From Octopus bimaculoides (taxonomy: Eukaryota): 52,223 nucleotides of DNA. Shown one piece after another: positions 2,518 to 46,578 of the stretch (position 1 is its first letter; every line of letters starts with the position of its first letter). The notes beneath the pieces are model-generated. The model was not told the DNA's origin and made no database searches. It worked only from the letters and a program-made list of their open reading frames with translations. Both the position numbers and the translations under genes were made by a program. The stretch is taken from assembly GCF_001194135.2 (NCBI RefSeq), contig NC_068994.1, forward strand, positions 15,068,719 through 15,120,941, in the 5' to 3' direction.

Positions 2518-3369
2518 TACACATGCTAATACACGACCCACGTTATATTCCCCATTCATGTTGCAACCACATCACGGGCAAAACTAGTCGGTATACAGCA
2601 CTTACTCGGTATTACTTGTATCTTTAGGGTTTGGTTAACTCCAATACCCTTCTTAATATATATANNNNNNNNNNNNNNNNNNNNNNNNNNNNNNNNNNNN
2701 NNNNNNNNNNNNNNNNNNNNNNNNNNNNNNNNNNNNNNNNNNNNNNNNNNNNNNNNNNNNNNNNNNNNNNNNNNNNNNNNNNNNNNNNNNNNNNNNNNNN
2801 NNNNNNNNNNNNNNNNNNNNNNNNNNNNNNNNNNNNNNNNNNNNNNNNNNNNNNNNNNNNNNNNNNNNNNNNNNNNNNNNNNNNNNNNNNNNNNNNNNNN
2901 NNNNNNNNNNNNNNNNNNNNNNNNNNNNNNNNNNNNNNNNNNNNNNNNNNNNNNNNNNNNNNNNNNNNNNNNNNNNNNNNNNNNNNNNNNNNNNNNNNNN
3001 NNNNNNNNNNNNNNNNNNNNNNNNNNNNNNNNNNNNNNNNNNNNNNNNNNNNNNNNNNNNNNNNNNNNNNNNNNNNNNNNNNNNNNNNNNNNNNNNNNNN
3101 NNNNNNNNNNNNNNNNNNNNNNNNNNNNNNNNNNNNNNNNNNNNNNNNNNNNNNNNNNNNNNNNNNNNNNNNNNNNNNNNNNNNNNNNNNNNNNNNNNNN
3201 NNNNNNNNNNNNNNNNNNNNNNNNNNNNNNNNNNNNNNNNNNNNNNNNNNNNNNNNNNNNNNNNNNNNNNNNNNNNNNNNNNNNNNNNNNNNNNNNNNNN
3301 NNNNNNNNNNNNNNNNNNNNNNNNNNNNNNNNNNNNNNNNNNNNNNNNNNNNNNNNNNNNNNNNNNNNN

Positions 3370-6585: not shown

Positions 6586-7594
6586 AGCATTTTAGCATCC
6601 ACTTTTCAGTAAAGAAGACAGAAAATGAAGGAAAAACAGAGAGACTGAGCAACAGAGTGATGGAGGTAGTGTAAATACTATGGAAAAGAATTATTGTTAA
6701 ATTAGAAATAGTGACAGACACCAATAGTCTGGTGATATCATCACATTCAAAATGACAATTCAATTTAAATCAAAAGAGCAGAATTAACAGAATAACACTA
6801 TAAAGAAAGACAATAAAAAAGGCAATTTCCTCAACTGTCAAAAATCTAAGTAATTTCATTTTGAATATATATATATATATATATATATANNNNNNNNNNN
6901 NNNNNNNNNNNNNNNNNNNNNNNNNNNNNNNNNNNNNNNNNNNNNNNNNNNNNNNNNNNNNNNNNNNNNNNNNNNNNNNNNNNNNNNNNNNNNNNNNNNN
7001 NNNNNNNNNNNNNNNNNNNNNNNNNNNNNNNNNNNNNNNNNNNNNNNNNNNNNNNNNNNNNNNNNNNNNNNNNNNNNNNNNNNNNNNNNNNNNNNNNNNN
7101 NNNNNNNNNNNNNNNNNNNNNNNNNNNNNNNNNNNNNNNNNNNNNNNNNNNNNNNNNNNNNNNNNNNNNNNNNNNNNNNNNNNNNNNNNNNNNNNNNNNN
7201 NNNNNNNNNNNNNNNNNNNNNNNNNNNNNNNNNNNNNNNNNNNNNNNNNNNNNNNNNNNNNNNNNNNNNNNNNNNNNNNNNNNNNNNNNNNNNNNNNNNN
7301 NNNNNNNNNNAAAAAAAAAAAAAAAAAAAACATAAATGAACATTGAACATTATTATATCGCCTGTGTTGTAAAAAAACAAAATGGCCCAAATGAACAAAC
7401 TGACATCACATTAAGAGCATTGGTTCTACTTCTGAGAAAAAAATGGAATCAATTACCTTTAGAGAGAGAGAACTAACAACATACTATAAGTTGGGCAAAC
7501 AAACTGTTTTGCTTATTAGATTCTTCAGTTTCATCTAATAAATAGTAACTTGAGGATATAACTCACCTTACAAGTACTAATATTTAATTCACAT

Positions 7595-8139: not shown

Positions 8140-9285
8140 TTTCTGGAATATTTCTGCCACACTATCATACTATAATAATACTATCGTCACAAGAAATTTT
8201 CTTTCATTAAAGAAAATACAGAAGCGTTAACAAGCAACTGTCTGGATTAGAAATGAATGAATCAGCTTAGGTCATGAGGCTTTTGGCAGATAAATTTAAA
8301 GTTTCTTACAAATAGATATCACAAAACATAATTAATCAATAGTTCAACTCTTTATGTCTCTATGAGATAATTTGCCTATAGACAGAGCAGGAAATGGAAT
8401 GCATCAAAATGTAAATGCATCTATATATCAGCACACACACTGAAATTTTTATACCAAGGCTATTTCTCTATCCATTTTGCTACAAGAAATGCTCCTCCAA
8501 TGTTCTATTGATCAGCTGCCTGATAAGTGTGACGAGTTTAAATGTGAAGTCTATTTATTCAAACTGCATTTCTGCCTAGAGGCAATACTCTCTATTATAA
8601 GATTGGTCATACAAAGTATAGCAACCTGAATACTATGTGTTGAGGCTATTAAACCAAAGCAACAAGAAATGGAATTCTGGCACAAGCATAGCATTCTTTC
8701 TCTAAGCAAAGCATAATGCACTGTTTGCTTTGTCTATAAATTTAAGATCAGATATGGTATTTCAAAACGGAATAGTTTGTATCAAGCAAATCATCCAGCT
8801 GTATAGCTGCTGTTCAAATAATTCCTGCAAAATATTGCACATTAAAGTCATCTATCTAAAATTAACAAACTCGATGTTTTCAGCATTTCATCATTTATAT
8901 TAATTCTATGGAGATATTCATGAGTTCACCCTACTTATTATTTCTTAAGTATCTAAAGGCAATTGAATGGGGGTTTCCCCCCACCTTTCAATAAATGAGA
9001 AGAAACAAAACCAAATATCTTGTGAATGAAAACGTATTTCCCTTTCTAACCTAATTGGTAATTATAAATATTCAGAGAGAATTAATCTTGTTAAATAGAA
9101 ACACTCTACAGTAAAGGGTAAGGGAGAAAAGGCTCAAGGAGAAAGAAAAAAACAGACAAAATATCTGCATTAAAATCAAATATGGTAGGGTGTCTTATAC
9201 ACAATATTCTAAGTTGAAAACTTTAGATTAACTGACATTATTATCCATACAAACAGAGAGCAAATATTCCTTCTGAGGTGTTTAA

Positions 9286-9505
9286 CACTTTAGCATTCAA
9301 ACAGGCCATATCCGGCCCACATATTTGATCTATTTTATGTTCAAACAGGTCAGATCTGGCCTCTCACACCTACACTACAATGTCATTCTAAGCATAAATA
9401 ATTGCATCATTGAAATCACAGAGCTACAAGATAATGTATGATCAATTTGAAACAATGTGGATAAATAAGCATTACAGCAGACAGATTAATCTGAATGCTA
9501 AAGGG
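9286..9505. mobile_element. 220-bp MITE with C(A/C)CTTTAGCATTCA TIRs and TTAA target site (piggyBac-like)
   Basis: ttaa|cactttagcattca ... tgaatgctaaaggg|ttaa. Confidence 0.85.
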
Positions 9506-9713
9506 TTAAAACCTAAAACTAAGAAAGATGAATGCAGAAGTGGGGCGGGAGGGGGGTTGGGGGGCAAATTTGACATTTAAGCTGACTGATGACAATGACA
9601 GGAATGTTACAGTCATATTTGACCTCCCCGTGAAACATATTCTACCCAGTAGGCAAAACTAAAAGTGATCAATATATGTTTATAGAAACAAGAGGAAATT
9701 TTGCGAGGCGAGT

Positions 9714-9913: not shown

Positions 9914-10745
9914 NNNNNNNNNNNNNNNNNNNNNNNNNNNNNNNNNNNNNNNNNNNNNNNNNNNNNNNNNNNNNNNNNNNNNNNNNNNNNNNNNNNNNNN
10001 NNNNNNNNNNNNNNNNNNNNNNNNNNNNNNNNNNNNNNNNNNNNNNNNNNNNNNNNNNNNNNNNNNNNNNNNNNNNNNNNNNNNNNNNNNNNNNNNNNNN
10101 NNNNNNNNNNNNNNNNNNNNNNNNNNNNNNNNNNNNNNNNNNNNNNNNNNNNNNNNNNNNNNNNNNNNNNNNNNNNNNNNNNNNNNNNNNNNNNNNNNNN
10201 NNNNNNNNNNNNNNNNNNNNNNNNNNNNNNNNNNNNNNNNNNNNNNNNNNNNNNNNNNNNNNNNNNNNNNNNNNNNNNNNNNNNNNNNNNNNNNNNNNNN
10301 NNNNNNNNNNNNNNNNNNNNNNNNNNNNNNNNNNNNNNNNNNNNNNNNNNNNNNNNNNNNNNNNNNNNNNNNNNNNNNNNNNNNNNNNNNNNNNNNNNNN
10401 NNNNNNNNNNNNNNNNNNNNNNNNNNNNNNNNNNNNNNNNNNNNNNNNNNNNNNNNNNNNNNNNNNNNNNNNNNNNNNNNNNNNNNNNNNNNNNNNNNNN
10501 NNNNNNNNNNNNNNNNNNNNNNNNNNNNNNNNNNNNNNNNNNNNNNNNNNNNNNNNNNNNNNNNNNNNNNNNNNNNNNNNNNNNNNNNNNNNNNNNNNNN
10601 NNNNNNNNNNNNNNNNNNNNNNNNNNNNNNNNNNNNNNNNNNNNNNNNNNNNNNNNNNNNNNNNNNNNNNNNNNNNNNNNNNNNNNNNNNNNNNNNNNNN
10701 NNNNNNNNNNNNNNNNNNNNNNNNNNNNNNNNNNNNNNNNNNNNN

Positions 10746-11800: not shown

Positions 11801-12216
11801 AAAACAAATAATAAATGAGTATATGCATATATACGTACAGGTGTGTGCATACCTACGTCTACCTGTATATATAGGTGCATATCTGGGTACAGGACATTGC
11901 AAACAAAACGTTGACAAGAAATAATAATAACCAGAGTACAGAAAACACACATAGAGAACATATAAACATTAAAAACAAAAAGTGAGCAAAACAAAAGCCT
12001 ACATACATGGAAATAGGTATAATAATCGCAGGTATAATNNNNNNNNNNNNNNNNNNNNNNNNNNNNNNNNNNNNNNNNNNNNNNNNNNNNNNNNNNNNNN
12101 NNNNNNNNNNNNNNNNNNNNNNNNNNNNNNNNNNNNNNNNNNNNNNNNNNNNNNNNNNNNNNNNNNNNNNNNNNNNNNNNNNNNNNNNNNNNNNNNNNNN
12201 NNNNNNNATATGTATG

Positions 12217-12724: not shown

Positions 12725-13556
12725 CTCATCCTCTTCCTCATCATTTAATGTCTACCTTTCCATGATTACAGGAGTCAAACAGAATTTGCTATGGTAGATT
12801 TTGTATGCCTGGATGCCCTTCCTATTGCCAACTCTCATCTGTTTCCCAAGATAGTTAAAATTTTCCTATAGCCAGACATGTTTGTCATACAAAACTGGAA
12901 ATGAACAAGCTCACTCGTATGATGATGCACATTTACAATCATCATATGGTGACAAAACAAGAATACACACCACAAACACACACACACATATATGATAGAT
13001 AGATTGATGGCACTCCGTCGCTTACAACGTCGAGGGTTCCAGTTGATCCGATCAACGGAACAGCCTGCTCGTGAAATTAATGTGCAAGTGGCTGAGCAAT
13101 CCACAGACACGTGTACCCTTAACGTAGTTCTCGGGGGATATTCAGCGTGACACNNNNNNNNNNTGGCTGAGCAATCCACAGACACGTGTACCCTTAACGT
13201 AGTTCTCGGGGGATATTCAGCGTGACACAGAGTGTGACAAGGCTGGCCCCTTTGAATTACAGGCACAACAGAAACAGGAAGTAAGAATGAGAGAAAGTTG
13301 TGGTGAAAGAGTACAGCAGGGTTCGCCACCATCCCCTGCCGGAGTTTCGTGGAGCTTTAGGTGTTTTCGCTCAATAAACACTCACAACGCCCGGTCTGGG
13401 AATTGAAAGCGCGATCCTATGATTGCAAGTCCGCTGCCCTAACCACTGGGCCATTGCGTCTCCACATGATAGATAGATACATACATAAGTACGTACATAC
13501 ATACATACATAGGGACTTCTCACAATTTCCGTTTACCATATCTATTTGCAAAGTTT
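12725..13556 (-). mobile_element. Old SINE type C with tail Y, split by a type B insertion in its microsatellite linker
   Basis: Tail piece 12725-12990 (catcatttaatgtc...ggatgcccttcctattgccaac) and head remnant 13510-13556 flank the type B copy. Confidence 0.6.
13005..13465 (-). mobile_element. Young tRNA-derived SINE type B with a 13-bp TSD
   Basis: TSD ATGATAGATAGAT at 12992-13004 and 13466-13478. Head ggagacgcaatggcccagtgg (A box) and B-box-like ctttcaattcc. Contains an artefactual duplication around the 10-N gap. Confidence 0.93.
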
Positions 13557-19926: not shown

Positions 19927-20307
19927 CTCTCTTGGTACTCCGTCGCTAACGACATCGAGGGTTCCATTTGATCAACGGAACAGCCTACTCATGAAATTAA
20001 CATGCAAGTGGCTGAGCAGCCCACAGACACGTGTACCCTTAACGTAGTTCTCGGGGATATTCAACGTGACACAGTGTGACAAGGCTGGCCTTTTGAAATA
20101 CAGGTACAACAGAAACAGGAAGTAAGAGTGAGAGAAAGTTGTGGTGAAAGAGTACAGCAGGGTTCGCCACCATCCCCTGCCGGAGCCTTGTGGAGCTTTT
20201 AGGTGTTTTTGCTCAATAAGCACTCACAACGCCCGGTCTGGGAATCGAAACCGCGATCCTATGACCGCGAATCCGCTGCCCTAACCAATGGGCTATTGTG
20301 CCTCCAC
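19927..20307 (-). mobile_element. SINE type B with an 11-bp TSD
   Basis: TSD ATTTAAATATT at 19916-19926 and 20308-20318; B box gtttcgattcc on the minus strand. Confidence 0.93.
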
Positions 20308-23815: not shown

Positions 23816-26136
23816 AATCTTTTGAATATTATAGTTCACATTTTCTAAGGTATCTTTCTCTTTCAACAGATGTAGCTGCTAATTCTGGGTTTGTTTTGAT
23901 AAAATTAACTAAACGGTTATTCAAAAATTAAACTACTTTAAAACAAATTTTTTTTTTAAATTATGAAAAAGAAAGGAATTCTTGACATAATGATATTTCC
24001 TTTATATAGAAAACAAGGCAAATATTTTTGGAGAGAAAAATTAGATGCTAATAGACACTCTAAACACTATACCAAAAAGTCTGAATCTAACTGACATGGG
24101 AATTAAAACCAGACTTTAGGAATTCTAGACTCATAATAGATGACATTATATAGCAAGTTTGAATATTTTAACTTAAACTTAATGGCATCATAGGAAACCA
24201 GCTGGACGACTACGACTAGCTATAGATCAAAGAAATAATATTGAAACACATATTGATTTGTCTAAAAAAACAAGCATACAAAAAAAATTACTTTGACATC
24301 TTCAAATAAAACATTCTATTATTATTAAATAGAAGCTTGATAAAGTGACATTTGAATTAGAATTAACAGTTTGCAAAAATTTTCAAAAATATAATTAAAT
24401 AAGTTTCCTTATCCAAATTCTCAGCTTCTTAAATGAAAGTGTCTGCTACTAACAATGTTGAAACAAAAGGGTAAAGATAAAAATTGCAGTAGCTAAATAG
24501 TTATGAATAATTACTGAATGAAAAGAATAAATTCTGACTTGAGAAATGCAGAAAACTAAAAAAAACAATTCGTATGAAAAACTAGCTACAACGATTTTAG
24601 AAAATTAAAAATGAAAATTTCTGTCAACTGCCAAGGAACAAAGAAACATAAACATATGTAAGAACATTAATTTCAGGGAAGCGTTATTTTAATTTCAGAG
24701 AAATTTATAATATATAATATTACAATTACATTTTCTGAAGTGGAATTTAATATTTTGCTTTTGTAATAAAAATACTAAAGAAAATATTAAAAATTTTCTT
24801 TAATTATCAAATTACAAATATAAACATATTTCATTATAATTAAGCCCTCCAATTAATAATTTCTATGAAAATATATGGTACTCCCCAATATGCCCATTAT
24901 AAGTATCAAAACACACACACACACACACACACACACGAGACGTATAGGTACAAATTATTCATATTCAAAAGTGAAAAAAAAAAAAAATCAGATTAGTAGC
25001 TTATTACATAAAATTTAACATTTTATAATTTCAGTGAATTTATTAAGATACTGAATAAAAATCGATAATAAAAATTGTTAGAATGAAAATTATATAATCC
25101 CTTTAGAAAATACAAATGAAGCCAGCCAACTTAAAAATGCATATATTTAAATTTAATTCATAATTGTCACAGTCAAAATTATCATTTAAAAAAAAAATGT
25201 TATCTTTATCTAAAATTCTTAATTTTTATTGTACAGAGATATATGCAAATGACTACTACTACTACTACTACTACTACTACCACAACTAACTAGCAAGCGA
25301 AATCATATTCTTATCGCAGAAAAATATCGAGAACTCGTATAAGTCAATGACCTCAACCAGTTGAATAAGCTTGAGACAGTTTGATGTGGTGTGTATGTAC
25401 CAAAATAGCTAGCAGAAACTATTCGATATGTCAATTGAAGTGTAAACGTCATCATTATCAATACCACTCGTTAAAATTAATCGTAAGATGTTAAATTATG
25501 CTTTGTTTTATTAGTGAATTGAGATCTGGACGACAAAATAATAATCGACTTATTTTTATGCCATTTTTGGTAGCAACTTGGCAAATCTGTTACAGACACA
25601 AGCACACACATACACACAAAAGAACACAAGTGGGGTTCAAAATTCACAACTAATCTCTCTNNNNNNNNNNNNNNNNNNNNNNNNNNNNNNNNNNNNNNNN
25701 NNNNNNNNNNNNNNNNNNNNNNNNNNNNNNNNNNNNNNNNNNNNNNNNNNNNNNNNNNNTTTATAGTATAGTTTTATAGTAGCTTCTGTCAGTTATAATA
25801 AAAGAGGAATGGTAATAATGGTATTCCGTAGTAGTTTCAATGACGTTGGCATTATAGCAACTGTAGTAACGCTGACGAATAGTAGTAGCAATAATAATAG
25901 TAGCAAGCAGTTTTAAGACTTTAGAGTTTAGTAGCGCGCAGTAGTAGAGAATGACAAGATTGGTAAATACAATCTTTCCATGAATATATTAAGATTTTTC
26001 TATTTTGAAATAAATTGCTTTATGTCTTTTTGGCTTGTACCAGCGTATATTTCTGTATAAGCTTGTACGCCTGTCACAATGCGTGCTTTCAGAGTTTGTG
26101 TGCACGCGCGTGCGTGCACGCGTACGCGTGCCAAAC

Positions 26137-26167
<31 letters not shown>

Positions 26168-28210
26168 CATCAATTTCTTTTTTCTTAAGTTGCAATTTAT
26201 CTGCTAACGATCGCAATTAGATTTAGAAGTCTGTCAATTATGCTTTTTTAGTTTTTTTTTCTTCCGAATATGGCATTTTTTTTTATTAACATTTAAACAG
26301 CTAACAAACCACTTTAGCTAAACCATTCTACAAATAAAAATGTTTTAAAATCACCCAAGATTTAAATAAATTTATTGCAAATAATTCCTCAAGTAAAATA
26401 ATCTGATATGCAATCATTATTATTATTACTATTTTCAATTATATCGCATTAAGGTTATATAGTAAAAGTTAAACTTTTATTAATGCAATCTCTTACTTAA
26501 CACGTGAGAGATTTGTCAAGCTCCAAGAAATTAGTTATATCAAATGTTAGTTCAATTTCTATACGATATTCTCTTCCGAATATGTTGATAATAAACATAA
26601 AAAATACTTCCATCATTTACTATAAAAGCTCGAAAAAAAAAAAAAACGGAAAAAAGAGAGCGAAAAAAAAAACTTGGTGAGCAATTTCTTTAAATATTGA
26701 TCAAATTATCTGAGCTAAAGAATTCACATTGTTGCTGCTAGAACATTCTGCGCACCCCCCCCCCCCCATCAACTTCAATTTCAGAGATAATTTATGCAGT
26801 CTATTGTAGTATGTTTGATCTCTTAGGCTAAACTATATCAGTAACAGTTATCGTGTTTTAGAGACAACAAAAGGCTAGTTGACCAACTTTTGCATTTTAT
26901 CTATGTTGGTTAAAATATCGGATTGTCTTTCACAAAATTGTGTTGTTTTTTTTAAAATTTTAAAATTTTGTTGTTGTTGCAATTAAAATTGAAATGAAGC
27001 ACGGATTCTAACAACTAATATGTACGTGATTCCTCTTGGTTTCTATTTTATCAATATAGTTTAGTGTACTAAATAAAAATCTAATACTGTACAAGTCAGT
27101 CTGGTATCACCTGGTAGGGATGTTACAGACGGTAAGTACTTCAGCAATTTTTCTTCTCAGAAGAAGGAAGACAAAGCAGACTAATGTAAAATTTTATATG
27201 GCAATTGAAAGTTAACCTAGATGCTAGATCAACAATTTTAGCAACTATGATAGTTTGATTTTAATACACAACGACACAATTATTGATAGTATTAATACAG
27301 TTCTGATAAAATTTATCTTTAATTTTTATCCAAGGACAAAAAGAAATGTATATTTAAAAAAAAAATATTTATAACTCTCATACACAACCCTGTTACTTCA
27401 TTCCTTCTCTCAATGTATATAAAATTAATATAAATTATTAATTCATTGTTAAATACAATGAATTGGTATATGAAACACAAACAGGCATACATTATGCAGA
27501 AACTCTTCACAAATATATTTTCAATACCAGCCACTAATATATAAACAACATTATTTGTGATAGTGTTTTAGTGAATAAAACTTTTTTTTTCTGAAGTTGA
27601 AGAGGTGTGAAGTAAAATTAAATTTGTCAGAAAAAAAAAAAAGGTTTATAAAACAAAAAAATTTATATTCTAAATGTACAGTAATTCAATATAGAAAATA
27701 TAGCATTAATTTTAGAACATCTTGTACATCAAGCCAGAATTTCATGATACAGCAGAGGAACAAATGCATAAAGGTATCGATTTTTTTCACCTTTGGATGA
27801 TTTAGTTCAAAGCATGAATCAATTAGGTTTTCTAAATCTAAACGTGTCTTAACATATGAAATTTTAGAATGTTCACAGTTCAACTGAACTACTCATATAT
27901 ACCAATATCGTTTCAGGTTTAGATTTAATGCATATTTTTTTCTCTCACTGTCTCTTTTCTTTTTTGTTTTATATATATATATATTTTATTTTAAAAAAAA
28001 GAAGAAGATCGAATTGAAAAATAAAACGGGATTATATCATAAAACAAGTTTTGTTTTTGAAAGAGGAAATGTAAAGGATCGTCTCAATTTCTTGATATCA
28101 AAACTGAAATTCTAAATTCTGTACACAATGTTGCACCACCAAGGAAAAAAAAAATGCCAGTTTACATAAATCTTTCCAAATTCAAGAATTTATTTACACG
28201 AAAAATAACT

Positions 28211-30805: not shown

Positions 30806-33800
30806 TTTACTCAAGAATCAAGCTTTGGTTCAGTCAAACAAAAGATGATAAAATATACCAGTTTATTTAGGTGTTTGGTGGTCCAGAAAGAGAGAGAAAG
30901 AGAAAATTATAAAAAAGGAATTTAGTAAAAATATCAATACCTTATATAGACATAAAGCTTCAGATTTATTGAAAGAAACACATGGGAAATTGTGACATTC
31001 ATGCCTTTCTCGAAGTAACGAAACAAGTCGTGAACACAAATATTTCCAATTTGGAAAAAAAAAAACCCGTTAAATTTTATACATTTTATTTTCCTTTTAA
31101 ATTTCACATATATATATNNNNNNNNNNNNNNNNNNNNNNNNNNNNNNNNNNNNNNNNNNNNNNNNNNNNNNNNNNNNNNNNNNNNNNNNNNNNNNNNNNN
31201 NNNNNNNNNNNNNNNNNNNNNNNNNNNNNNNNNNNNNNNNNNNNNNNNNNNNNNNNNNNNNNNNNNNNNNNNNNNNNNNNNNNNNNNNNNNNNNNNNNNN
31301 NNNNNNNNNNNNNNNNNNNNNNNNNNNNNNNNNNNNNNNNNNNNNNNNNNNNNNNNNNNNNNNNNNNNNNNNNNNNNNNNNNNNNNNNNNNNNNNNNNNN
31401 NNNNNNNNNNNNNNNNNNNNNNNNNNNNNNNNNNNNNNNNNNNNNNNNNNNNNNNNNNNNNNNNNNNNNNNNNNNNNNNNNNNNNNNNNNNNNNNNNNNN
31501 NNNNNNNNNNNNNNNNNNNNNNNNNNNNNNNNNNNNNNNNNNNNNNNNNNNNNNNNNNNNNNNNNNNNNNNNNNNNNNNNNNNNNNNNNNNNNNNNNNNN
31601 NNNNNNNNNNNNNNNNNNNNNNNNNNNNNNNNNNNNNNNNNNNNNNNNNNNNNNNNNNNNNNNNNNNNNNNNNNNNNNNNNNNNNNNNNACATTGTCTCA
31701 GTCATTTTATTTATGGCGGTAAGATGCAGTTTGGAGGAAGATTTGGCTGTTGTTTCTAGCAAGTCGAGAGCTCCACTTAGAGTTGGTTAGTCTGTGTAGA
31801 GCCTAGTTGGTTGCGATATGTCTGTCGGTGATGGTGAATGGAAAGATTGGTAAAAGAGGGGTGTAATGGACAAGGAAAGCGCGAGAAGTGTGGTGTTGTG
31901 TGAGAGTTGGTAGAGGAGGAATCAATTGAAACTGGAAAACTAGGGAGAGAGAAGGGGAAAGAAAAAAAAAGAAGAATCAGGTGACGGCAAGGAAAGGCAA
32001 GAACGTCAAATGATAAATTGAAGTAATGGTAGTGTGGTGGTGGTGGTAGTGTGGTGGTGGTGGTGGCTGATGGGGGGGAAGAGCGAGAAATCAATTGAAA
32101 CTAGCATAGGAATAAAGCGACAAATGATATTGCAAAAAAACAAAAAATAAGTGTTAAGGAGAGAGAGAGAAAGAGAGAATGGTATTTTGGCAAGTGGCGA
32201 CGGTAGAGATGGAGATGAAGGGACAAGCGCGGTTAACAGACAGAACAGCACGGTGATGGGACGGCGGAGGGGGGAGGAAAGAATACGTAGAAGATAGAGT
32301 AGAGTAGAGAAGTGTGTGGAAAAATACACAAAGGTGATGGTGATAAAGCAAGTTGCATTGAAATGAGCTCGGTGGTGGTGGTGGTGTTGATGGTAAAGAC
32401 ATACATACAGAAGGGGAAGTTGTGGTGGAAAAGAATAGAGAATAAAGAGGAAAAGAAAATTATAAACGAAAAATAAAATAAAACAAAGAAAGAATGGATA
32501 GATGGATGGATGGATGGTGGCAACAGTGTGAAAAATAAAGTGCTAAGTGACAGACAGCTAGCTTAAGTAGTGATGATGAAAGTGGTGGTGGAGTATCTTA
32601 AAAACCGTTCGGTACAACGTCGCCCACTTAAATAGGTCCCTCAACACATGGTTGAATCGAATGGCAAATACGAACTAAGGAAGGGGAGCTTCTCTCTCTC
32701 TCTCTTTATGCGGGCGATCGACGAGCAAGAAATAGCAGCCAAATGTTCCTTCAAATATCAACTACACCACTGTCCTTGAATAACGAAGAGACACCAACCA
32801 CACTGATCAATGTGGTCCTAGATTTACATGAAATAAAAAACAAAACAAAACAAACAAAAAAAGACAGTATGGTCACGGCTGGAACGCCTTTTGCTGATAG
32901 GTTTCTGTTCGATCGGGAGTGTAATGGGGTTTGCGGGTGGGGTGGGGGCAAGAAGCGAGTGCTTAAATGGAAATACAATAGACAGAGAAAGGTTGGTTGT
33001 ATAAATAAATGGATCACTAAGTTGGGGAAGAGAAAGAAAGAAAGAGAGAAAGAAAGGAAAACTCATACATCCATACGTGTGTTACATACTAATTTTTACA
33101 TTAACACATTAGCTTACTCGACACCAGTTTCAAATAAAAAGCCATGGTTCACACACGCACACACACACATATACAAATATACACACATACAAATATACGC
33201 ACACATACACAAATATATACACACATACACACACATTATTAAACGCTCGCGCGCACCACTTAAACACTGATATCTCTCAACCAACATCGTTTTCCAGTTT
33301 TGGAAAAATTCAAAATGTTTCTTCATTCCGTCTGTCAAATGCAGACGCTCGTTTCTAAACCAAACCAAAAAGGAAAGGAAAAAAGAAAGGAAACAACTAC
33401 AACAATAATAATAATAATTTCTTTTACAATAATAATAATGATAATAATAAAAAACTGCTAGAGATTGACCGATGACCAGACCAGACCAGACCAGCTTTAG
33501 ACATTAGTTACACGAATTACAAATAAATTACAAAGACATCAATTTAAAACAAAGCGCAGACTGACAACGATTTTTGTATTTCTTTTAAAGCTTCTCACGA
33601 ATAAAATAGTTGAAAAAATTGTAGTAAATAGTAAAAGTAAATGAATTTTTTTTTTTAAATTAAGGAAGTTAGATAATATTTCCAATATGTTCAGATGAGA
33701 TAGATAAATAGATAGATAGATAAATTGATAGATAGATAAATTGATAGATAGATAAATTGATAGAGCAAAAGAGACAATGTAATTTTATATTTAGAAAACG

Positions 33801-34133
33801 GCCAGTTTAACTCTTTGACATTCAACTTGGAATAATTAACCCACCCCATACTAAAAGGTCTTTAGAATTGTAATTTTTCTTAATTTAATATATTTTAAAA
33901 ATCTGTGACAGTTGTGATTCTTGCGTGTGTATTACATGTACATATACATGCATGTATATTTACACACATAAAATATACATTGACAAGTATACATATAAAT
34001 ACATATGTACACATGTAGCTATACATGCATACACACATATGTGGATACACACACATATATATATATATTAATATATATATACATATATTAATACATACAC
34101 ATACATATATAGACGCACATATATATATAGACG

Positions 34134-34167
<34 letters not shown>

Positions 34168-34655
34168 TACACACACATCCATTCATACACACATATACTC
34201 ATTTATACACAAACATATACACATCCATTCATACACACACATATATATACACATATATATACATACACATACATAACAGATGAAGCTTTTCTTATTTACA
34301 TGAATGCATAGCATATGTGGATATATGTGCATGTGCATGCATATATAATAGAGATGCAGATTGTAAGTATGTATATATATATGTAGGTATGTGAATGTGC
34401 GGGGATTTTTGTTACCTAATTCTTTCTTTATTTTGGAAAACTCGATTATTGTTAGTTACATTTACTGTTAATCGTTAAAAAAAAATCCACAGAGAATAGC
34501 AGAAAACTTTACAGAAACTAATACCAGTTAGCAAGAAAATAATATAAAATAAAAATCAGAACAATATATATATTCTTTTTTAATACAACAACAAAAGCAT
34601 GCATTCCTTATGGACTTTCTCAAATAAAACAATAACATTTTTTTTCATCACTTAC

Positions 34656-34811
34656 AGACAGTTCTACGTTAGTAGTATCCTTGCCAGAAACTGCTCGTAC
34701 CACACCAGAGCGCCATTCCCAGTCAGAAATTTTCGCAAGTTTTAATTTTCCAGGACCAGAAACATACAAAAATCTTTTCCCGACAATTTCTTCCCGGTAT
34801 TTATACGCCAT
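34656..34811 (-). CDS. JMJD1C: First coding exon of a KDM3/JMJD1C-family JmjC histone H3K9 demethylase (52 codons, phase-0 donor)
   Basis: Encodes MAYKYREEIVGKRFLYVSGPGKLKLAKISDWEWRSGVVRAVSGKDTTNVELS, matching the recalled JMJD1C N-terminus (MAVETRAELVGKRFL...WRAGVIRAVS...DLA|VYVEFD). ATG at 34811 is followed by a canonical GTAAGT donor starting at 34655. The remainder of the 63-aa ORF is intron read-through. Confidence 0.93.
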
Positions 34812-35887
34812 TTCTTACGTTATATATCCATGGTGCAGTTTTTTTTTCGCCATCAGCTCAGCAAAACACACACATTACATTAAATCTCATGGAATGTCTT
34901 TCGCGTAATGTTATGGGGTGTAGGAATATACATGAAAGTGGGGCGGTCACGAGGTCAAGTTAGAAATGGTCTCCGCCGCGACGGTCCATATAGATTAAGC
35001 TACAATAAACATTGTTTTTTTTTTTTGCTATTGTTATAAATTCTTTTGCATTCTATCAGCAAATTTTATAGATACAAATACAAACGAGAAAATTATTCTA
35101 TATCAATTAAAAAAAAAAAAAGAAAATATCGAATATAATCATTTCACAGCAGATTTCTCGATTTCTTAAAATATCACGGAAATAAATTAATAAATAGCAT
35201 TGAGTAAATAAGAAAATTCCCAGAGAAATAAAAGAAAACACATGCGGGTTGCGTTAGTGTGAATGTGATATGGTTTCAATGTTATCAGCATGTTAGCAGA
35301 AGTGTAACAAGCTTTATCACCGCTTCAAATCATTCCGCATACACTTCTGCAAATAGTTCCATGTGCAACATTTAAAATAAAAAGGAAAAAGAAAGAAAAA
35401 ATGGCATTTTATTTTAATCTGGTTTTGAAAATTAGAAACGTTACTAGTTAAATTCCAGAAATTTAAACGTTTTTTATGATTTTATGCATCTGCAACTTAT
35501 TTGATTAATAAAGAATCACGAAATGCTTTCAAATCGGGAATTGAAAGTCGAAAGAAAAAAAAAAAATTAAACGAGCAGACGACATTTTCACAAAGCTTCT
35601 TTCAGCTTCTATATGAAAACAATTTCATTGTATAATTCATTTCAAATAATATTGCGTTAACATGTATTTAATAAGTGATTTGTTTACAATGCGAAACTAA
35701 ATACTTAGTTTTTTTTTTTTTGACAAGTGAATCTGCGGCGTTTTGTCATATGATAATGACGTCAGCGATTAGCCGCCATGTAATGCATAAAGATTGTTTG
35801 TGAAGCTCCTTACTTTCAAAGGAAAAGACTAAATCAGATCCGTTGATCGTGGCGTAAAATTACTTTAGTTGCGTGTAGTGTGTGGAT
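34812..35887. promoter_or_regulatory. Divergent (bidirectional) promoter and 5' leaders between JMJD1C and REEP
   Basis: 1076 bp between opposing ATGs and CpG-richer than the flanks. Contains GGGGCGG (34940-34946), TGACGTCA (35757-35764) and GCCGCCATGT, a YY1-like motif (35772-35781). TSS positions cannot be seen. Confidence 0.7.
34815..34853 (-). other. Upstream ORF MAKKKLHHGYIT*, in frame with the JMJD1C ATG; nested uORF MDI* at 34831-34820
   Basis: Minus strand reads ATG GCG AAA AAA AAA CTG CAC CAT GGA TAT ATA ACG TAA GAA ATG. The nested ATG lies in a GCACCATGG context. Whether these are in the mRNA depends on the TSS. Confidence 0.5.
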
Positions 35888-35919
35888 ATGGTATCCAGTT
35901 TAATATCTCGTATAGTTAT
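35888..35919 (+). CDS. REEP: First coding exon (32 nt, phase 2) of a REEP1-4 subfamily ER-membrane-shaping protein
   Basis: ATG GTA TCC AGT TTA ATA TCT CGT ATA GTT AT|GTAAGT = MVSSLISRIV(I/M). Recalled human REEP1-4 start MVSW(I/M)ISR(L/A)VV, also with a 32-nt first coding exon. Perfect GTAAGT donor at 35920-35925. Exon 2 (LVFGxLYPAY...) not found in the window. Confidence 0.85.
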
Positions 35920-36220
35920 GTAAGTAAATAATGTCTTATTTATCTATTCTTTATTGTTTAACACTGTCTAACCCAAATCCCTTTTTTAATATATATATAT
36001 TTTTTGAGAAGGATCAAGCAATTGACATCTAATTAACGTCTGTCAGGAAACACTTTGTCCAACTCGGCCCGATTTAACTGGTCAGCGAAATATTTCCGCG
36101 AAGTTTTTTCTTATTAGAGAATATAAAATTTAAGCTATTTTCATGACTATAATGAGTTTTAACAGATTTTTTTCCTATCGCCTACGTAAAACTTCATATT
36201 TGGCGATGAAATGGACAACA

Positions 36221-36229
36221 ACCGGAAGT
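36221..36229 (+). promoter_or_regulatory. ETS/GABP-type motif ACCGGAAGT in the proximal REEP intron 1
   Basis: Exact consensus match within a CpG-containing stretch ~300 bp after the donor. Function not shown. Confidence 0.35.
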
Positions 36230-36510
36230 TATTCCAGTCATTTCCCCCCCCCACTCTCCTTCTTGTTCGAAACTTAATGTTTTCAATATATGATATCTAC
36301 AATATATAATCGATTTCTCTTAATTACGAATATTATTTATCTATCTGTTTAGACAGTCATTTTAACTTAATAAGGTATACTAACTTGTCAGATTATGATC
36401 AAATAGGATCGTTAGATCGCCCACGGGGGTGATAGGTATGACAACAATTTACAGGTTTTTTTTCTTGGTTTTCTTGTCATCATATATATATATGGCTTAG
36501 TGAATTTGAA

Positions 36511-36642
36511 TTTTCAAACTTTTTGACTTGCGGACCCCTTTATATTTCAGGCTTTACCTTAGGGACCCCCTTATAAACGCTTATGAAATTTATACATAAA
36601 TATTTGCTTAAAATAACATATTTTTTTACATTTATCTATTTA
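36511..36642 (-). mobile_element. Partial copy of the hAT MITE family at 44258-44514, cut by a gap
   Basis: ttttcaaactttttgacttgcggacccctttatatttcaggctttacc is the reverse complement of the 44258 element's right end. Confidence 0.85.
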
Positions 36643-39153
36643 NNNNNNNNNNNNNNNNNNNNNNNNNNNNNNNNNNNNNNNNNNNNNNNNNNNNNNNNNN
36701 NNNNNNNNNNNNNNNNNNNNNNNNNNNNNNNNNNNNNNNNNNNNNNNNNNNNNNNNNNNNNNNNNNNNNNNNNNNNNNNNNNNNNNNNNNNNNNNNNNNN
36801 NNNNNNNNNNNNNNNNNNNNNNNNNNNNNNNNNNNNNNNNNNNNNNNNNNNNNNNNNNNNNNNNNNNNNNNNNNNNNNNNNNNNNNNNNNNNNNNNNNNN
36901 NNNNNNNNNNNNNNNNNNNNNNNNNNNNNNNNNNNNNNNNNNNNNNNNNNNNNNNNNNNNNNNNNNNNNNNNNNNNNNNNNNNNNNNNNNNNNNNNNNNN
37001 NNNNNNNNNNNNNNNNNNNNNNNNNNNNNNNNNNNNNNNNNNNNNNNNNNNNNNNNNNNNNNNNNNNNNNNNNNNNNNNNNNNNNNNNNNNNNNNNNNNN
37101 NNNNNNNNNNNNNNNNNNNNNNNNNNNNNNNNNNNNNNNNNNNNNNNNNNNNNNNNNNNNNNNNNNNNNNNNNNNNNNNNNNNNNNNNNNNNNNNNNNNN
37201 NNNNNNNNNNNNNNNNNNNNNNNNNNNNNNNNNNNNNNNNNNNNNNNNNNNNNNNNNNNNNNNNNNNNNNNNNNNNNNNNNNNNNNNNNNNNNNNNNNNN
37301 NNNNNNNNNNNNNNNNNNNNNNNNNNNNNNNNNNNNNNNNNNNNNNNNNNNNNNNNNNNTATATATAGGGACTCAATTCAGTTGTTGATCGCTTGTTTTA
37401 AATTCCTAACTGTTCACATAAAAAAAATTCATGTATATAAATATATTTACGTATTCCTTTATTTCGACTTTTACTTCAACGAACCTTTTGGAAGTAATTT
37501 GAAAAGTATATACACAAATGATCGATTTCTTAAATAAACAAAAAATACATAAGGTATCAAGATAGCTTTGTTTATTGAAAATTAAGGGCCTTCTGAAGAT
37601 GCTATTGATCGAGAATTTATTAAATCTTTTGTGTTCATTTGTGATAAATCTGGGCAAAAATTTGCTAGTTTATTTATTATTTCCATCAAAATCGTCCATT
37701 ATCTGTCTGTTTCACATATCTTAGTATCATGTTACTGTGATAAACAACTGCTTTTTTTCTCATTATATGACGTTATATCATGACATAACAATTCACACTA
37801 TTCCGCAATTATATTGTAGAGATGAGACAACCCCCGTAGCCTTATTTAGAAGACGCATTTCAAGATGAGAAGAAACTAATTGTGTTTGCTTTTTAAGTTT
37901 TGAAAATTTATATTGAAGTTTGAAAATAATCCTTATTAAAATAACGAAGGTATTAATTAAGTATATGAATAACCTTTTGAGCACCTTAAGTTGTTGTGAA
38001 GTACATATTTGTTGATCATTCTAAGTTCAAAATTGTATAAACGTGGAAGAGCAGTGCCCTGTGAGCCTTCTGAGGCTCTCCTAAACCAGTGCTTCTATAA
38101 ACAGATTCAAGTTCCCATATGTATCACTTAGAGTGCACTCTTGAAGGTCAGGGTCAAATGGTTGTTTATTACAATCTTATTTTATGTCTACTGTTTTAAT
38201 CTATTGTGGCTAGGTATTCTTCCATAAAATTTATGAGTTACTGGTTTTTATATTTCGTTTAGTTTAATATAATTATAGGTTAATGTTTACTTTTATAATC
38301 TTATAATATTCTATTATAGCAAAGAGAGGTTTCATAAGTATTAAAAAAATGACACTGTAACACGATTTTTGTCCTTGGGTAGCAACTGTTATTTCATATT
38401 TGCTTACCCCTAGAAGATATGGAAAATGGCTAATATTTCCTTCAAAGTTTGCTTTTGTTACACCTATTCAAATCCCAGAGAATCCCTCTCAACACATGGC
38501 TATGATGCTCCCCAACTACTTGCTCATGATCAGAGACGTACATATTGTCAGCCACCAACGGACATGCTCGAGTGATTAAGGTCATGCAACTGGCAAGCAA
38601 ACCCTGGTATTGAAAAGAATATTTGCTATAATATTTCTGCTTCAGCAATTTCAGCGCTAAATCTGTCAGAAATCTTATGGAAAATAGGTCAAAACATTGA
38701 TGTCCTTGTCACAAAAGCAAAGTTTGAAGGGAATAGTTTTGTCATTTCTTTTGATTTCTAGACAAAAATAAATAAGATCATAACACTTACTGACCAAAAA
38801 AAGGTAAATAAATAAATAATAATAATAATAATAAAGCTTTTGTAACACAGTGTAATTAGTTAAGAGACGTCTCAAATAGGCTAGTGACACATTTAAAATA
38901 TGCTAAAGGTGATGTACTGAATGTTGTTTTTCAATTTCTCTTGAAGTTGGAGAAAGAAAACAAAAACCTGATGGCAGATAATAGTAATTCTCAAAGAAAA
39001 GGAGAGATAATTCAGAGAAATCAAGAATAAACTTTACTAAATTAAGTTATATACTTTGATGGCTTTTCTTTAGTAAGGGGACTATTGACAGGTTTCAGTG
39101 TTATCAGACTTCATCATTTTTTTATAAATAGAAAAATTATAAAGATTTTTGCC

Positions 39154-46203: not shown

Positions 46204-46578
46204 GTGGAGGCGCAATGGCCCAGTGGTTAGGGCAGCGGACTCGCGGTCATAGGATCGCGGTTTCAATTCCCAGACCGGGCGTTGTGAGTGTTTATTGAGC
46301 GAAAACGCCTAAATTTCCACAAGGCTCCGGCAGGGGATGGTGGCGAACCCTGCTGTACTCTTCCACCACAACTTTCTCTTACTCTTACTTCCTGTTTCTG
46401 TTGTGCCTGTAATTCAAAGGGTCAGCCTTGTCATGCTGAATATCCCCGAGAACTATGTTAAGGGTACACGTGTCAGTGGTGTGCTCAGCCACTTGCACAT
46501 TAATTTCACGAGCAGGCTGTTTCGTTGATTGGGTCAACTGGAACCCTTGACATCGTAAGCGACGGAGTGCCAACAACA
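46204..46578 (+). mobile_element. SINE type B with a 7-bp TSD
   Basis: gtggaggcgcaatggcccagtggttagggcagcggactc...gtttcaattcc; TSD TTTATAT at 46197-46203 and 46579-46585. Confidence 0.93.

Follow-up and report, generated by a model that had tools for sequence, protein, structure and literature searches.

Divergent first exons of a KDM3/JMJD1C-type and a REEP1-4-type gene in Octopus bimaculoides: a compact member of a known bilaterian gene pair

Linkage of KDM3-type and REEP-type genes is recorded in published synteny data. In Supplementary Dataset 3 of Robert et al. 2022 (BMC Genomics 23:143, PMC8851819), syntenic block 631, classed as 'Bilateria novel', contains the orthogroups OG0001768 (JMJD1C/KDM3B) and OG0000695 (REEP2 / TB2-DP1-HVA22); the two genes are listed as immediate neighbours in the scallop Mizuhopecten (T17174/T17175) and in Lingula (g12807/g12808), and the sea star Acanthaster has them on a common scaffold. 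Human REEP1-4 were all placed in paralogons with KDM3A, KDM3B, JMJD1C or HR, and amphioxus pro-orthologues were named (Tinti et al. 2012, Open Biol 2:120103, Fig. 4). Conserved 5′-5′ gene pairs in general were found to be enriched for short intergenic distance and co-expression (Irimia et al. 2012, Genome Res 22:2356). In this study, a stretch of 52,223 nucleotides from Octopus bimaculoides (assembly GCF_001194135.2, contig NC_068994.1, positions 15,068,719 to 15,120,941, forward strand), hereafter called the window, was analysed for a head-to-head KDM3-REEP pair that an earlier note, made from the letters alone, had proposed. The divergent adjacency is supported as an ancient bilaterian microsynteny that is compact in octopus. 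The microsynteny as such is not new, being already contained in the published synteny tables and the vertebrate paralogon literature. Neither REEP nor KDM3/JMJD1 is named in the main text of Irimia et al. 2012, REEP and KDM3 are not mentioned in the supplements of Schmidbaur 2022, and literature searches found no paper text discussing the pair outside vertebrates.

Two opposing first exons

Both first exons were located where the earlier note had placed them, on opposite strands and each followed by a GTAAGT splice donor (Table 1). The start codons are 1077 bp apart (A to A), and the genes diverge from an intergenic region of 1076 bp (34812-35887). One coordinate was corrected: the minus-strand ATG lies at 34811-34809, not at 34812.

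Table 1. Features of the KDM3-REEP region (positions in the window; a point marks features given for no strand)
Feature	Position	Strand	Description or basis
KDM3 exon 1 splice donor GTAAGT	34650-34655	-	read in sequence
KDM3/JMJD1C-type first coding exon	34656-34811	-	156 nt, 52 codons, phase 0; N-terminal DUF7030
Mini upstream open reading frame ATGGATATATAA (MDI*)	34820-34831	-	upstream ATG 20 nt before KDM3 start codon
KDM3-proximal conserved non-coding block (5′ leader and putative core promoter)	34812-34990	-	motif alignment, identity to L017
MCAT-like palindrome	34882-34898	-	KDM3-side block
GTATTCC box	34918-34931	-	KDM3-side block
Direct repeat TGACCTnnTGACC	34940-34959	-	KDM3-side block
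GGCGGA/CGCGGAAG-like box	34968-34984	-	KDM3-side block
AT-rich spacer, CpG not depleted	34991-35719	.	unconserved between proximal blocks
REEP-proximal tripartite module	35746-35785	+	conserved order and spacing
E-box TCATATGA	35746-35753	+	REEP-side module
cAMP response element (CRE) TGACGTCA	35757-35764	+	REEP-side module
YY1-like box GCCGCCATGTAATG	35772-35785	+	REEP-side module
REEP1-4-type first coding exon	35888-35919	+	32 nt, phase 2; MVSSLISRIV + AT
REEP exon 1 splice donor GTAAGT	35920-35925	+	GT[AG]AG at equal offset in all lineages having the exon
CpG-undepleted island over both first exons and intergenic region	34501-36500	.	CpG observed/expected ratio

The translation of the minus-strand exon, MAYKYREEIVGKRFLYVSGPGKLKLAKISDWEWRSGVVRAVSGKDTTNVELS, matched the Pfam family DUF7030 (PF22989) with E=1.1e-18 and 67.5 bits (cutoff 27). 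DUF7030 was also detected in human JMJD1C (residues 8-71) and KDM3A (12-77), where it is followed by PWWP_KDM3B and Tudor_KDM3B; since these two proteins begin with DUF7030, the domain was taken as the N-terminal module of the KDM3 family. Full-length proteins matching exon 1 over their first ~51 residues were retrieved when 1.84 billion protein representatives were searched exhaustively with a profile of the exon. Their source names were lysine-specific demethylase 3A/3B-like in Limulus and Tachypleus, and JmjC domain-containing histone demethylation protein 2C in Pomacea, Trichogramma, Papilio, Microctonus, Conger and Silurus. Identity of the octopus exon to annotated KDM3/JMJD1C N-termini was 73% for Pomacea, 69% for Tachypleus (E=1.6e-17 for the Tachypleus KDM3) and 55-60% for teleosts. 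Residues 1-52 of the annotated Pomacea JMJD1C-like protein aligned to exactly 34811-34656 (E=7.7e-20), ending at the predicted donor. At the homologous codon the spliced Pomacea protein reads ...DFT|ALVEYEDVEW and the genomic open reading frame (ORF; P0008) reads through as ...DFTVSFH, and the position of KDM3 intron 1 is therefore confirmed. In the related loci L008 and L009, later KDM3 exons aligned to JMJD1C residues 55-112 and 169-214. By sequence comparison, the minus-strand exon is the N-terminus of a KDM3/JMJD1C-family H3K9 demethylase.

As ten codons alone cannot identify a REEP exon, the genomic context of relatives was used for the plus-strand exon. An exon with the same frame and length, coding for M[VI][SLA]..[ILV]SR.. 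and followed by GT[AG]AG, was present in 10 of 12 further lineages. A search for the pattern ATG + 29 nt + GTRAG with M[VILA][STA]xx[IVLMF][STCA][RK] gave 9 matches in 12 independent sequences (257 kb), compared with 0.02 expected from shuffled sequences, and all 9 lay upstream of the KDM3 exon on the opposite strand. REEP exons 2-4, encoding e.g. KWMMYWIVFAFFTCIETFADI... and PFYYE.KI..., were found downstream on the same strand in L008, L010 and L011; they represent the TB2/DP1/HVA22 core of REEP1-4, and the phase-2 junction of exons 1 and 2 was reconstructed in L010. The REEP1-4 subfamily belongs to TB2/DP1/HVA22 (PF03134), a domain with the stretch KWMMYWIVFA... that is expected in the exons after exon 1. 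Annotated REEP1-like proteins of Capitella, Owenia, Lingula, Mya, Lamellibrachia and Branchiostoma, together with Logan-derived ORFs, start with MVSA[IL][IL]SR.., and in REEP1-like proteins of these invertebrates, vertebrates and arthropods the decapeptide is fused to (I/V)L.FGTLYPAY. The octopus exon has the REEP1-4 N-terminus M-[VI]-S-x-[ILV]-[ILV]-S-R-x-[IVL] in a 32-nt, phase-2 first exon.

Two protein searches gave, among the matches listed, no exact match to an octopus REEP starting MVSSLISRIV; the closest were Logan ORFs with MVSALISRIV fused to exon 2. The short-query searches, that with the KDM3 exon included, appeared to list the best 120 matches, of a length up to about 1.75 times that of the query (longest 89 aa for a 52-aa query, 182 for 104 and 328 for 198), and full-length KDM3 and REEP proteins were thereby hidden. 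The plus-strand mini-exon is best read as the first coding exon of a REEP1-4-type gene, the 35919|35920 donor being the one predicted for use in octopus. The KDM3/JMJD1C and REEP identities given in the earlier note are upheld by the DUF7030 match, the alignments of annotated proteins and the conserved REEP mini-exon.

Within the window only the first coding exon of each gene was recognised, and the first introns must exceed 34.6 kb (KDM3) and 16.3 kb (REEP). Searches with human KDM3A (tblastn) and JMJD1C, exon peptides of the related loci and the annotated Pomacea and Tachypleus proteins detected no later KDM3 exon in the window; the same held for later REEP exons with human REEP1, related-locus peptides and the annotated Mya and Lingula proteins. 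The PWWP_KDM3B and Tudor_KDM3B domains of the KDM3 family, and its C-terminal zinc finger and JmjC catalytic domain, are thus not encoded in the window. REEP exon 2 was likewise not found in L001, which spans the window gap 36643-37359 (L001 930-1366).

The pair in other lineages

For comparison, a protein search was made with the KDM3 exon, which listed 41 ORF-type matches on unannotated animal contigs of public assemblies, and the DNA around representatives of twelve further lineages was compared with the window. Contigs L001/L002, L003/L004, L005/L006 and L008/L009 were grouped as belonging to the same lineage each. The divergent KDM3-REEP pair was present in 10 of the 12 further lineages (11 of 13 counting the window), and in all 11 the two exons lie on opposite strands and diverge (5′-5′). 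This agrees with the proposal of the earlier note that the linkage predates the protostome-deuterostome split, for which the scallop, Lingula and Acanthaster entries of block 631 in the published dataset and the vertebrate paralogons also speak. Other protostomes do carry the linkage, namely the scallop and Lingula in that dataset and the insect-like lineage L021 in our sample.

The distance between the two ATGs ranged fifteen-fold, from 341 bp to 5.2 kb. It was 1058 bp in L001 (DNA ~90% identical to the window), 1093 bp in L017 (KDM3 exon protein 92% identical), 756 bp in L019, 655 bp in both L003 and L005, 1020 bp in L010, 2298 bp in L011, 4479 bp in L014 and 341 bp in L021. Two copies in one assembly, L008 (8273-10001) and L009 (4846-10001), measured 1728 and 5155 bp. 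Their KDM3 and REEP first exons are identical and both have a coverage of ~29x; they are either haplotypes or recent duplicates. The spacer of L009 contains two 14-bp tandem arrays (8912-9187 and 9242-9560). Since the two spacers differ by ~3.4 kb, the spacer evidently tolerates large insertions.

L021 is insect-like: its KDM3 exon groups with that of Microctonus, and insect REEPs are the closest in type to its REEP start, MISSIVSRLV. L011 (ERZ12293627) came from a Sphagnum (peat-moss) microbiome metagenome and is a small moss-dwelling invertebrate with a compact genome. Its REEP introns are 68-80 bp long, a Nop16-like ORF and a DUF4517 ORF lie beyond REEP, the KDM3 exon carries an Asn/Ser-rich insertion, and none of the mollusc-type promoter motifs described below was found in it.

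CpG island, conserved blocks and upstream ORF

The CpG observed/expected ratio was 1.0-1.56 across 34.5-36.5 kb, compared with 0.42 for the whole window (median 0.31 per 500 bp), and 1.39 in the spacer. A single CpG-island-like domain thus spans both starts. In relatives, the ratio of the intergenic region versus the flanks was 1.23 versus 0.39 (L003) and 0.87 versus 0.37 (L010). Such a pattern is the signature of a promoter island that is presumably hypomethylated in the germline. One other patch in the window exceeded 1.1, at 25751-26500 (~1.5), inside KDM3 intron 1. It adjoins the gap 25661-25759 and contains an (ATT)n repeat as well as low-complexity sequence of the GCGTGC/ACGCGT type; being a low-complexity GCGTGC-type repeat beside an assembly gap, it is probably not an alternative promoter and was rejected as such.

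Conservation between the start codons was confined to the two ends. In comparison with L017, identity was 0.89 in the KDM3 exon, 0.77 in the 180 bp upstream of it and 0.82 in the REEP-proximal ~170 bp (35720-35887), versus 0.50 in the 730-bp spacer and 0.45-0.51 in introns. The conserved proximal blocks are ~755 bp apart (34990 to 35746). On the KDM3 side the consensus comprises a CGCGGAAG/GGCGGA box, a TGACCTnnTGACCY direct repeat, a GTATTCMTMCAC box and a ACATTCCAGAGAATTT palindrome (window 34882-34984), which align in the window, L017, L019, L003, L005, L007, L010, L008 and partly L014. The KDM3-proximal block is thus kept in L007, a lineage discussed below for its REEP side. On the REEP side, TCAYRTGA, TGACGTCA and ATGGCYGCC/GCCGCCATGTAAYG follow each other in fixed order 95-190 bp upstream of the REEP ATG; this module was found in eight sequences (window, L001, L017, L019, L003, L005, L010 and L008) and in weaker form in L021.

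The 5′ leader of KDM3 contains an upstream ATG that starts a mini upstream ORF (uORF) of 2-5 codons. The upstream ATG is located exactly at -20 in 11 of 13 sequences, at -19 in L020 and at -22 in L011. Homologous upstream ATGs were observed in L001, L003, L005, L007, L008, L010, L014, L017, L019, L020 and L021. The encoded peptides are MDT*, MDI*, MAS*, MGSW* and MCTYWI* (asterisk, stop); the peptide may change while the ATG stays in place. The stop codon of the L021 uORF overlaps the main KDM3 ATG (TAATGG).

Elsewhere in the window, an interspersed repeat is present in three copies, 12835-13381 (-), 19972-20223 (-) and 46288-46528 (+), with near-identical spurious ORFs whose peptides read MFIERKHLK...PAGDGGEPCCTL.PQLSL.LTSCFCCACNSKG and MVANPAVLFHHNFL...NIPENYVKGTRV.G.LSHLH.NF.SRLFR; the one copy scanned (12835-13332) had no Pfam match. 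Neither had ten other ORFs of the window, and a scan of the window detected no Rfam families and no tRNAs. Eight runs of N (2665-3369, 6890-7310, 9914-10745, 12039-12207, 13154-13163, 25661-25759, 31118-31689 and 36643-37359) mark the sequence as a draft short-read scaffold, the last starting 0.7 kb downstream of REEP exon 1.

Promoter model, alternatives and known systems

The reading that we prefer, with a probability of about 0.8, is that the locus holds the 5′ ends of two divergent genes in an ancient compact adjacency, with two apposed core promoters in one open domain. Each gene would have its own conserved proximal promoter and 5′-leader block of ~180 bp. The REEP side carries the E-box, the CRE and the YY1-like box, and the KDM3 side an ETS-like box, the TGACCT direct repeat, the MCAT-like palindrome and the upstream ATG at -20. 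An unconserved AT-rich spacer of ~730 bp separates the blocks, both of which lie in a single ~2-kb CpG-undepleted, presumably hypomethylated island. The bidirectional promoter region would then be a single domain of open chromatin in which two core promoters lie close to each other. A rearrangement with its breakpoint there would harm at least one of the two genes, and this would account for the long survival of the pair. Positions of the transcription start sites, hypomethylation, binding of factors to the motifs and any co-regulation are predicted parts of this model. The operational definition of a bidirectional promoter (transcription start sites < 1 kb apart) would apply only if the start sites are near the conserved blocks. 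The 1.1-kb shared promoter of the earlier note stands in part: one CpG island does cover both exons, whereas conservation is split into two ~180-bp blocks with an unconserved spacer between them.

Several points weigh against this reading. No later exon of KDM3 or REEP lies inside the window. The transcription start sites, the splicing of octopus REEP exon 1 and any co-expression of the pair are predictions, and the assignment of motifs to factors (TFE/MITF, CREB/ATF, YY1, nuclear receptors, TEAD) is by consensus match. In L007 and L020, KDM3 exon 1 is present with no recognisable REEP exon 1 or 2 within 10 kb upstream, so that either the spacer is longer or the linkage has been lost. The spacer tolerates large change, as the ~3.4-kb difference between L008 and L009 of one assembly, which includes the 14-bp tandem arrays, illustrates. 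We take the vertebrate KDM3-REEP pairs to be kilobases to ~100 kb apart (2-100 kb), with human JMJD1C-REEP3 and KDM3A-REEP1 divergent and KDM3B-REEP2 and REEP4-HR tandem. With such distances and orientations, and in view of the variable spacer, tight promoter sharing cannot be what keeps the linkage everywhere.

Among the alternatives, neutral inertia survives best and is a possibility of some substance, although we do not favour it. It holds that the promoters are independent, that the short intergenic region is a small target for breakpoints and that H3K9 demethylation and shaping of the endoplasmic reticulum (ER) are uncoupled. Two separate conserved blocks around a variable, unconserved spacer are what it predicts, and no functional link between the two proteins is obvious. 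The pair is nevertheless kept across molluscs, a brachiopod, an echinoderm and an insect-like lineage, as far as the published dataset and our sample cover them; all four vertebrate ohnologue pairs were retained after two genome duplications; and the pair persists with a spacer of 4-5 kb, or, in vertebrates, tens of kb. Retention across phyla, in ohnologues and over long spacers is more than the small-target argument predicts. For the wide survival of the pair, small-target inertia and interleaved regulation are both possible.

An alternative in the opposite direction, that one truly shared bidirectional promoter with a single set of elements imposes obligate co-expression and that selection for co-regulation keeps the pair together, we consider doubtful. 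The 1077 bp between the ATGs, reduced to 341-756 bp in some lineages, and the one continuous CpG-undepleted island over both genes are in its favour, as is the enrichment of conserved 5′-5′ pairs for short distance and co-expression (Irimia et al. 2012). It is opposed by the presence of two gene-proximal blocks with different motifs, by a spacer that evolves like an intron and reaches 5.2 kb, and by the haplotype-like copies in one assembly that differ by 3.4 kb. As the spacer varies fifteen-fold, one copy has a 3.4-kb insertion and vertebrate pairs are far apart, obligate sharing of elements is not required for the linkage.

More speculative, and improbable at present, is a functionally coupled unit in which a conserved cis-grammar would coordinate the chromatin demethylase and ER morphogenesis across Bilateria, and the mini-uORF at -20 would act as an ancient translational brake on KDM3. 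If true, the grammar would consist of the TFE/MITF-like E-box, the CRE and the YY1-like box on the REEP side, and of the TGACCT repeat, the MCAT-like palindrome and the fixed upstream ATG at -20 on the KDM3 side.

It is very unlikely that the plus-strand mini-exon is unused in octopus, a relic or chance ORF, with the functional REEP1-4 gene starting elsewhere. The exon has only 10.7 codons, and the searches made retrieved neither exon 2 nor an octopus transcript. It is, however, 100% identical together with its upstream 170 bp in L001, a relative of ~90% identity, and exon and upstream region are ~80% identical in L017, where introns are at ~45-50%. The ATG, the frame, the 32-nt length and the donor are kept in further lineages, three of which have REEP exons downstream. 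Finally, an assembly artefact, in which a false join in the gap-rich draft scaffold placed unrelated first exons side by side, is hardly credible. One of the eight N runs does begin just 0.7 kb beyond the REEP exon, but the stretch 31690-36642, which includes the spacer and the two exons, has no gap, and three contigs assembled independently from other read sets (L001, L002 and L017) show the same arrangement.

The preferred reading, two genes with apposed core promoters in an ancient adjacency, makes the locus a base-resolved case of old divergent neighbours that persist in a genome for which heavy rearrangement has been reported. What is newly described here are the conserved promoter motifs and the upstream ATG at -20 of the KDM3 start; motifs and mini-uORF are directly testable with reporters. 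For annotation, the locus supplies the true first exons of KDM3 and REEP, exons that are often absent from gene models. The question why KDM3 and REEP have stayed linked in many invertebrates and in all four vertebrate ohnologue pairs may also be approached from this locus.

Compared with the known systems, the octopus pair adds one more well-resolved case to a bilaterian microsyntenic block that was already known. It has two orthogroups in common with block 631 (PMC8851819). The dataset for that block consists of gene lists, which carry no orientation, distance, promoter anatomy or discussion of the pair. The further neighbours listed in block 631, a SWIB/MDM2-domain gene, CHMP3 and SNRPG, lie outside the octopus window. 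In the vertebrate paralogons a REEP1-4-type gene is linked to a KDM3-type gene as in octopus (Tinti et al. 2012), and the linkage of the human genes in paralogons, to which the earlier note had referred, is documented there. The octopus pair itself is divergent with 1.1 kb between the ATGs. The vertebrate pairs are farther apart and two of the four are tandem. KDM3-REEP resembles HSPD1-HSPE1 (Irimia et al. 2012) in being divergent and conserved across phyla, with a short distance between the genes and a promoter region of CpG-island type. HSPD1 and HSPE1, however, are functionally linked and co-expressed from a known shared promoter, whereas KDM3-REEP, a pair with no known functional link, has two separate conserved blocks.

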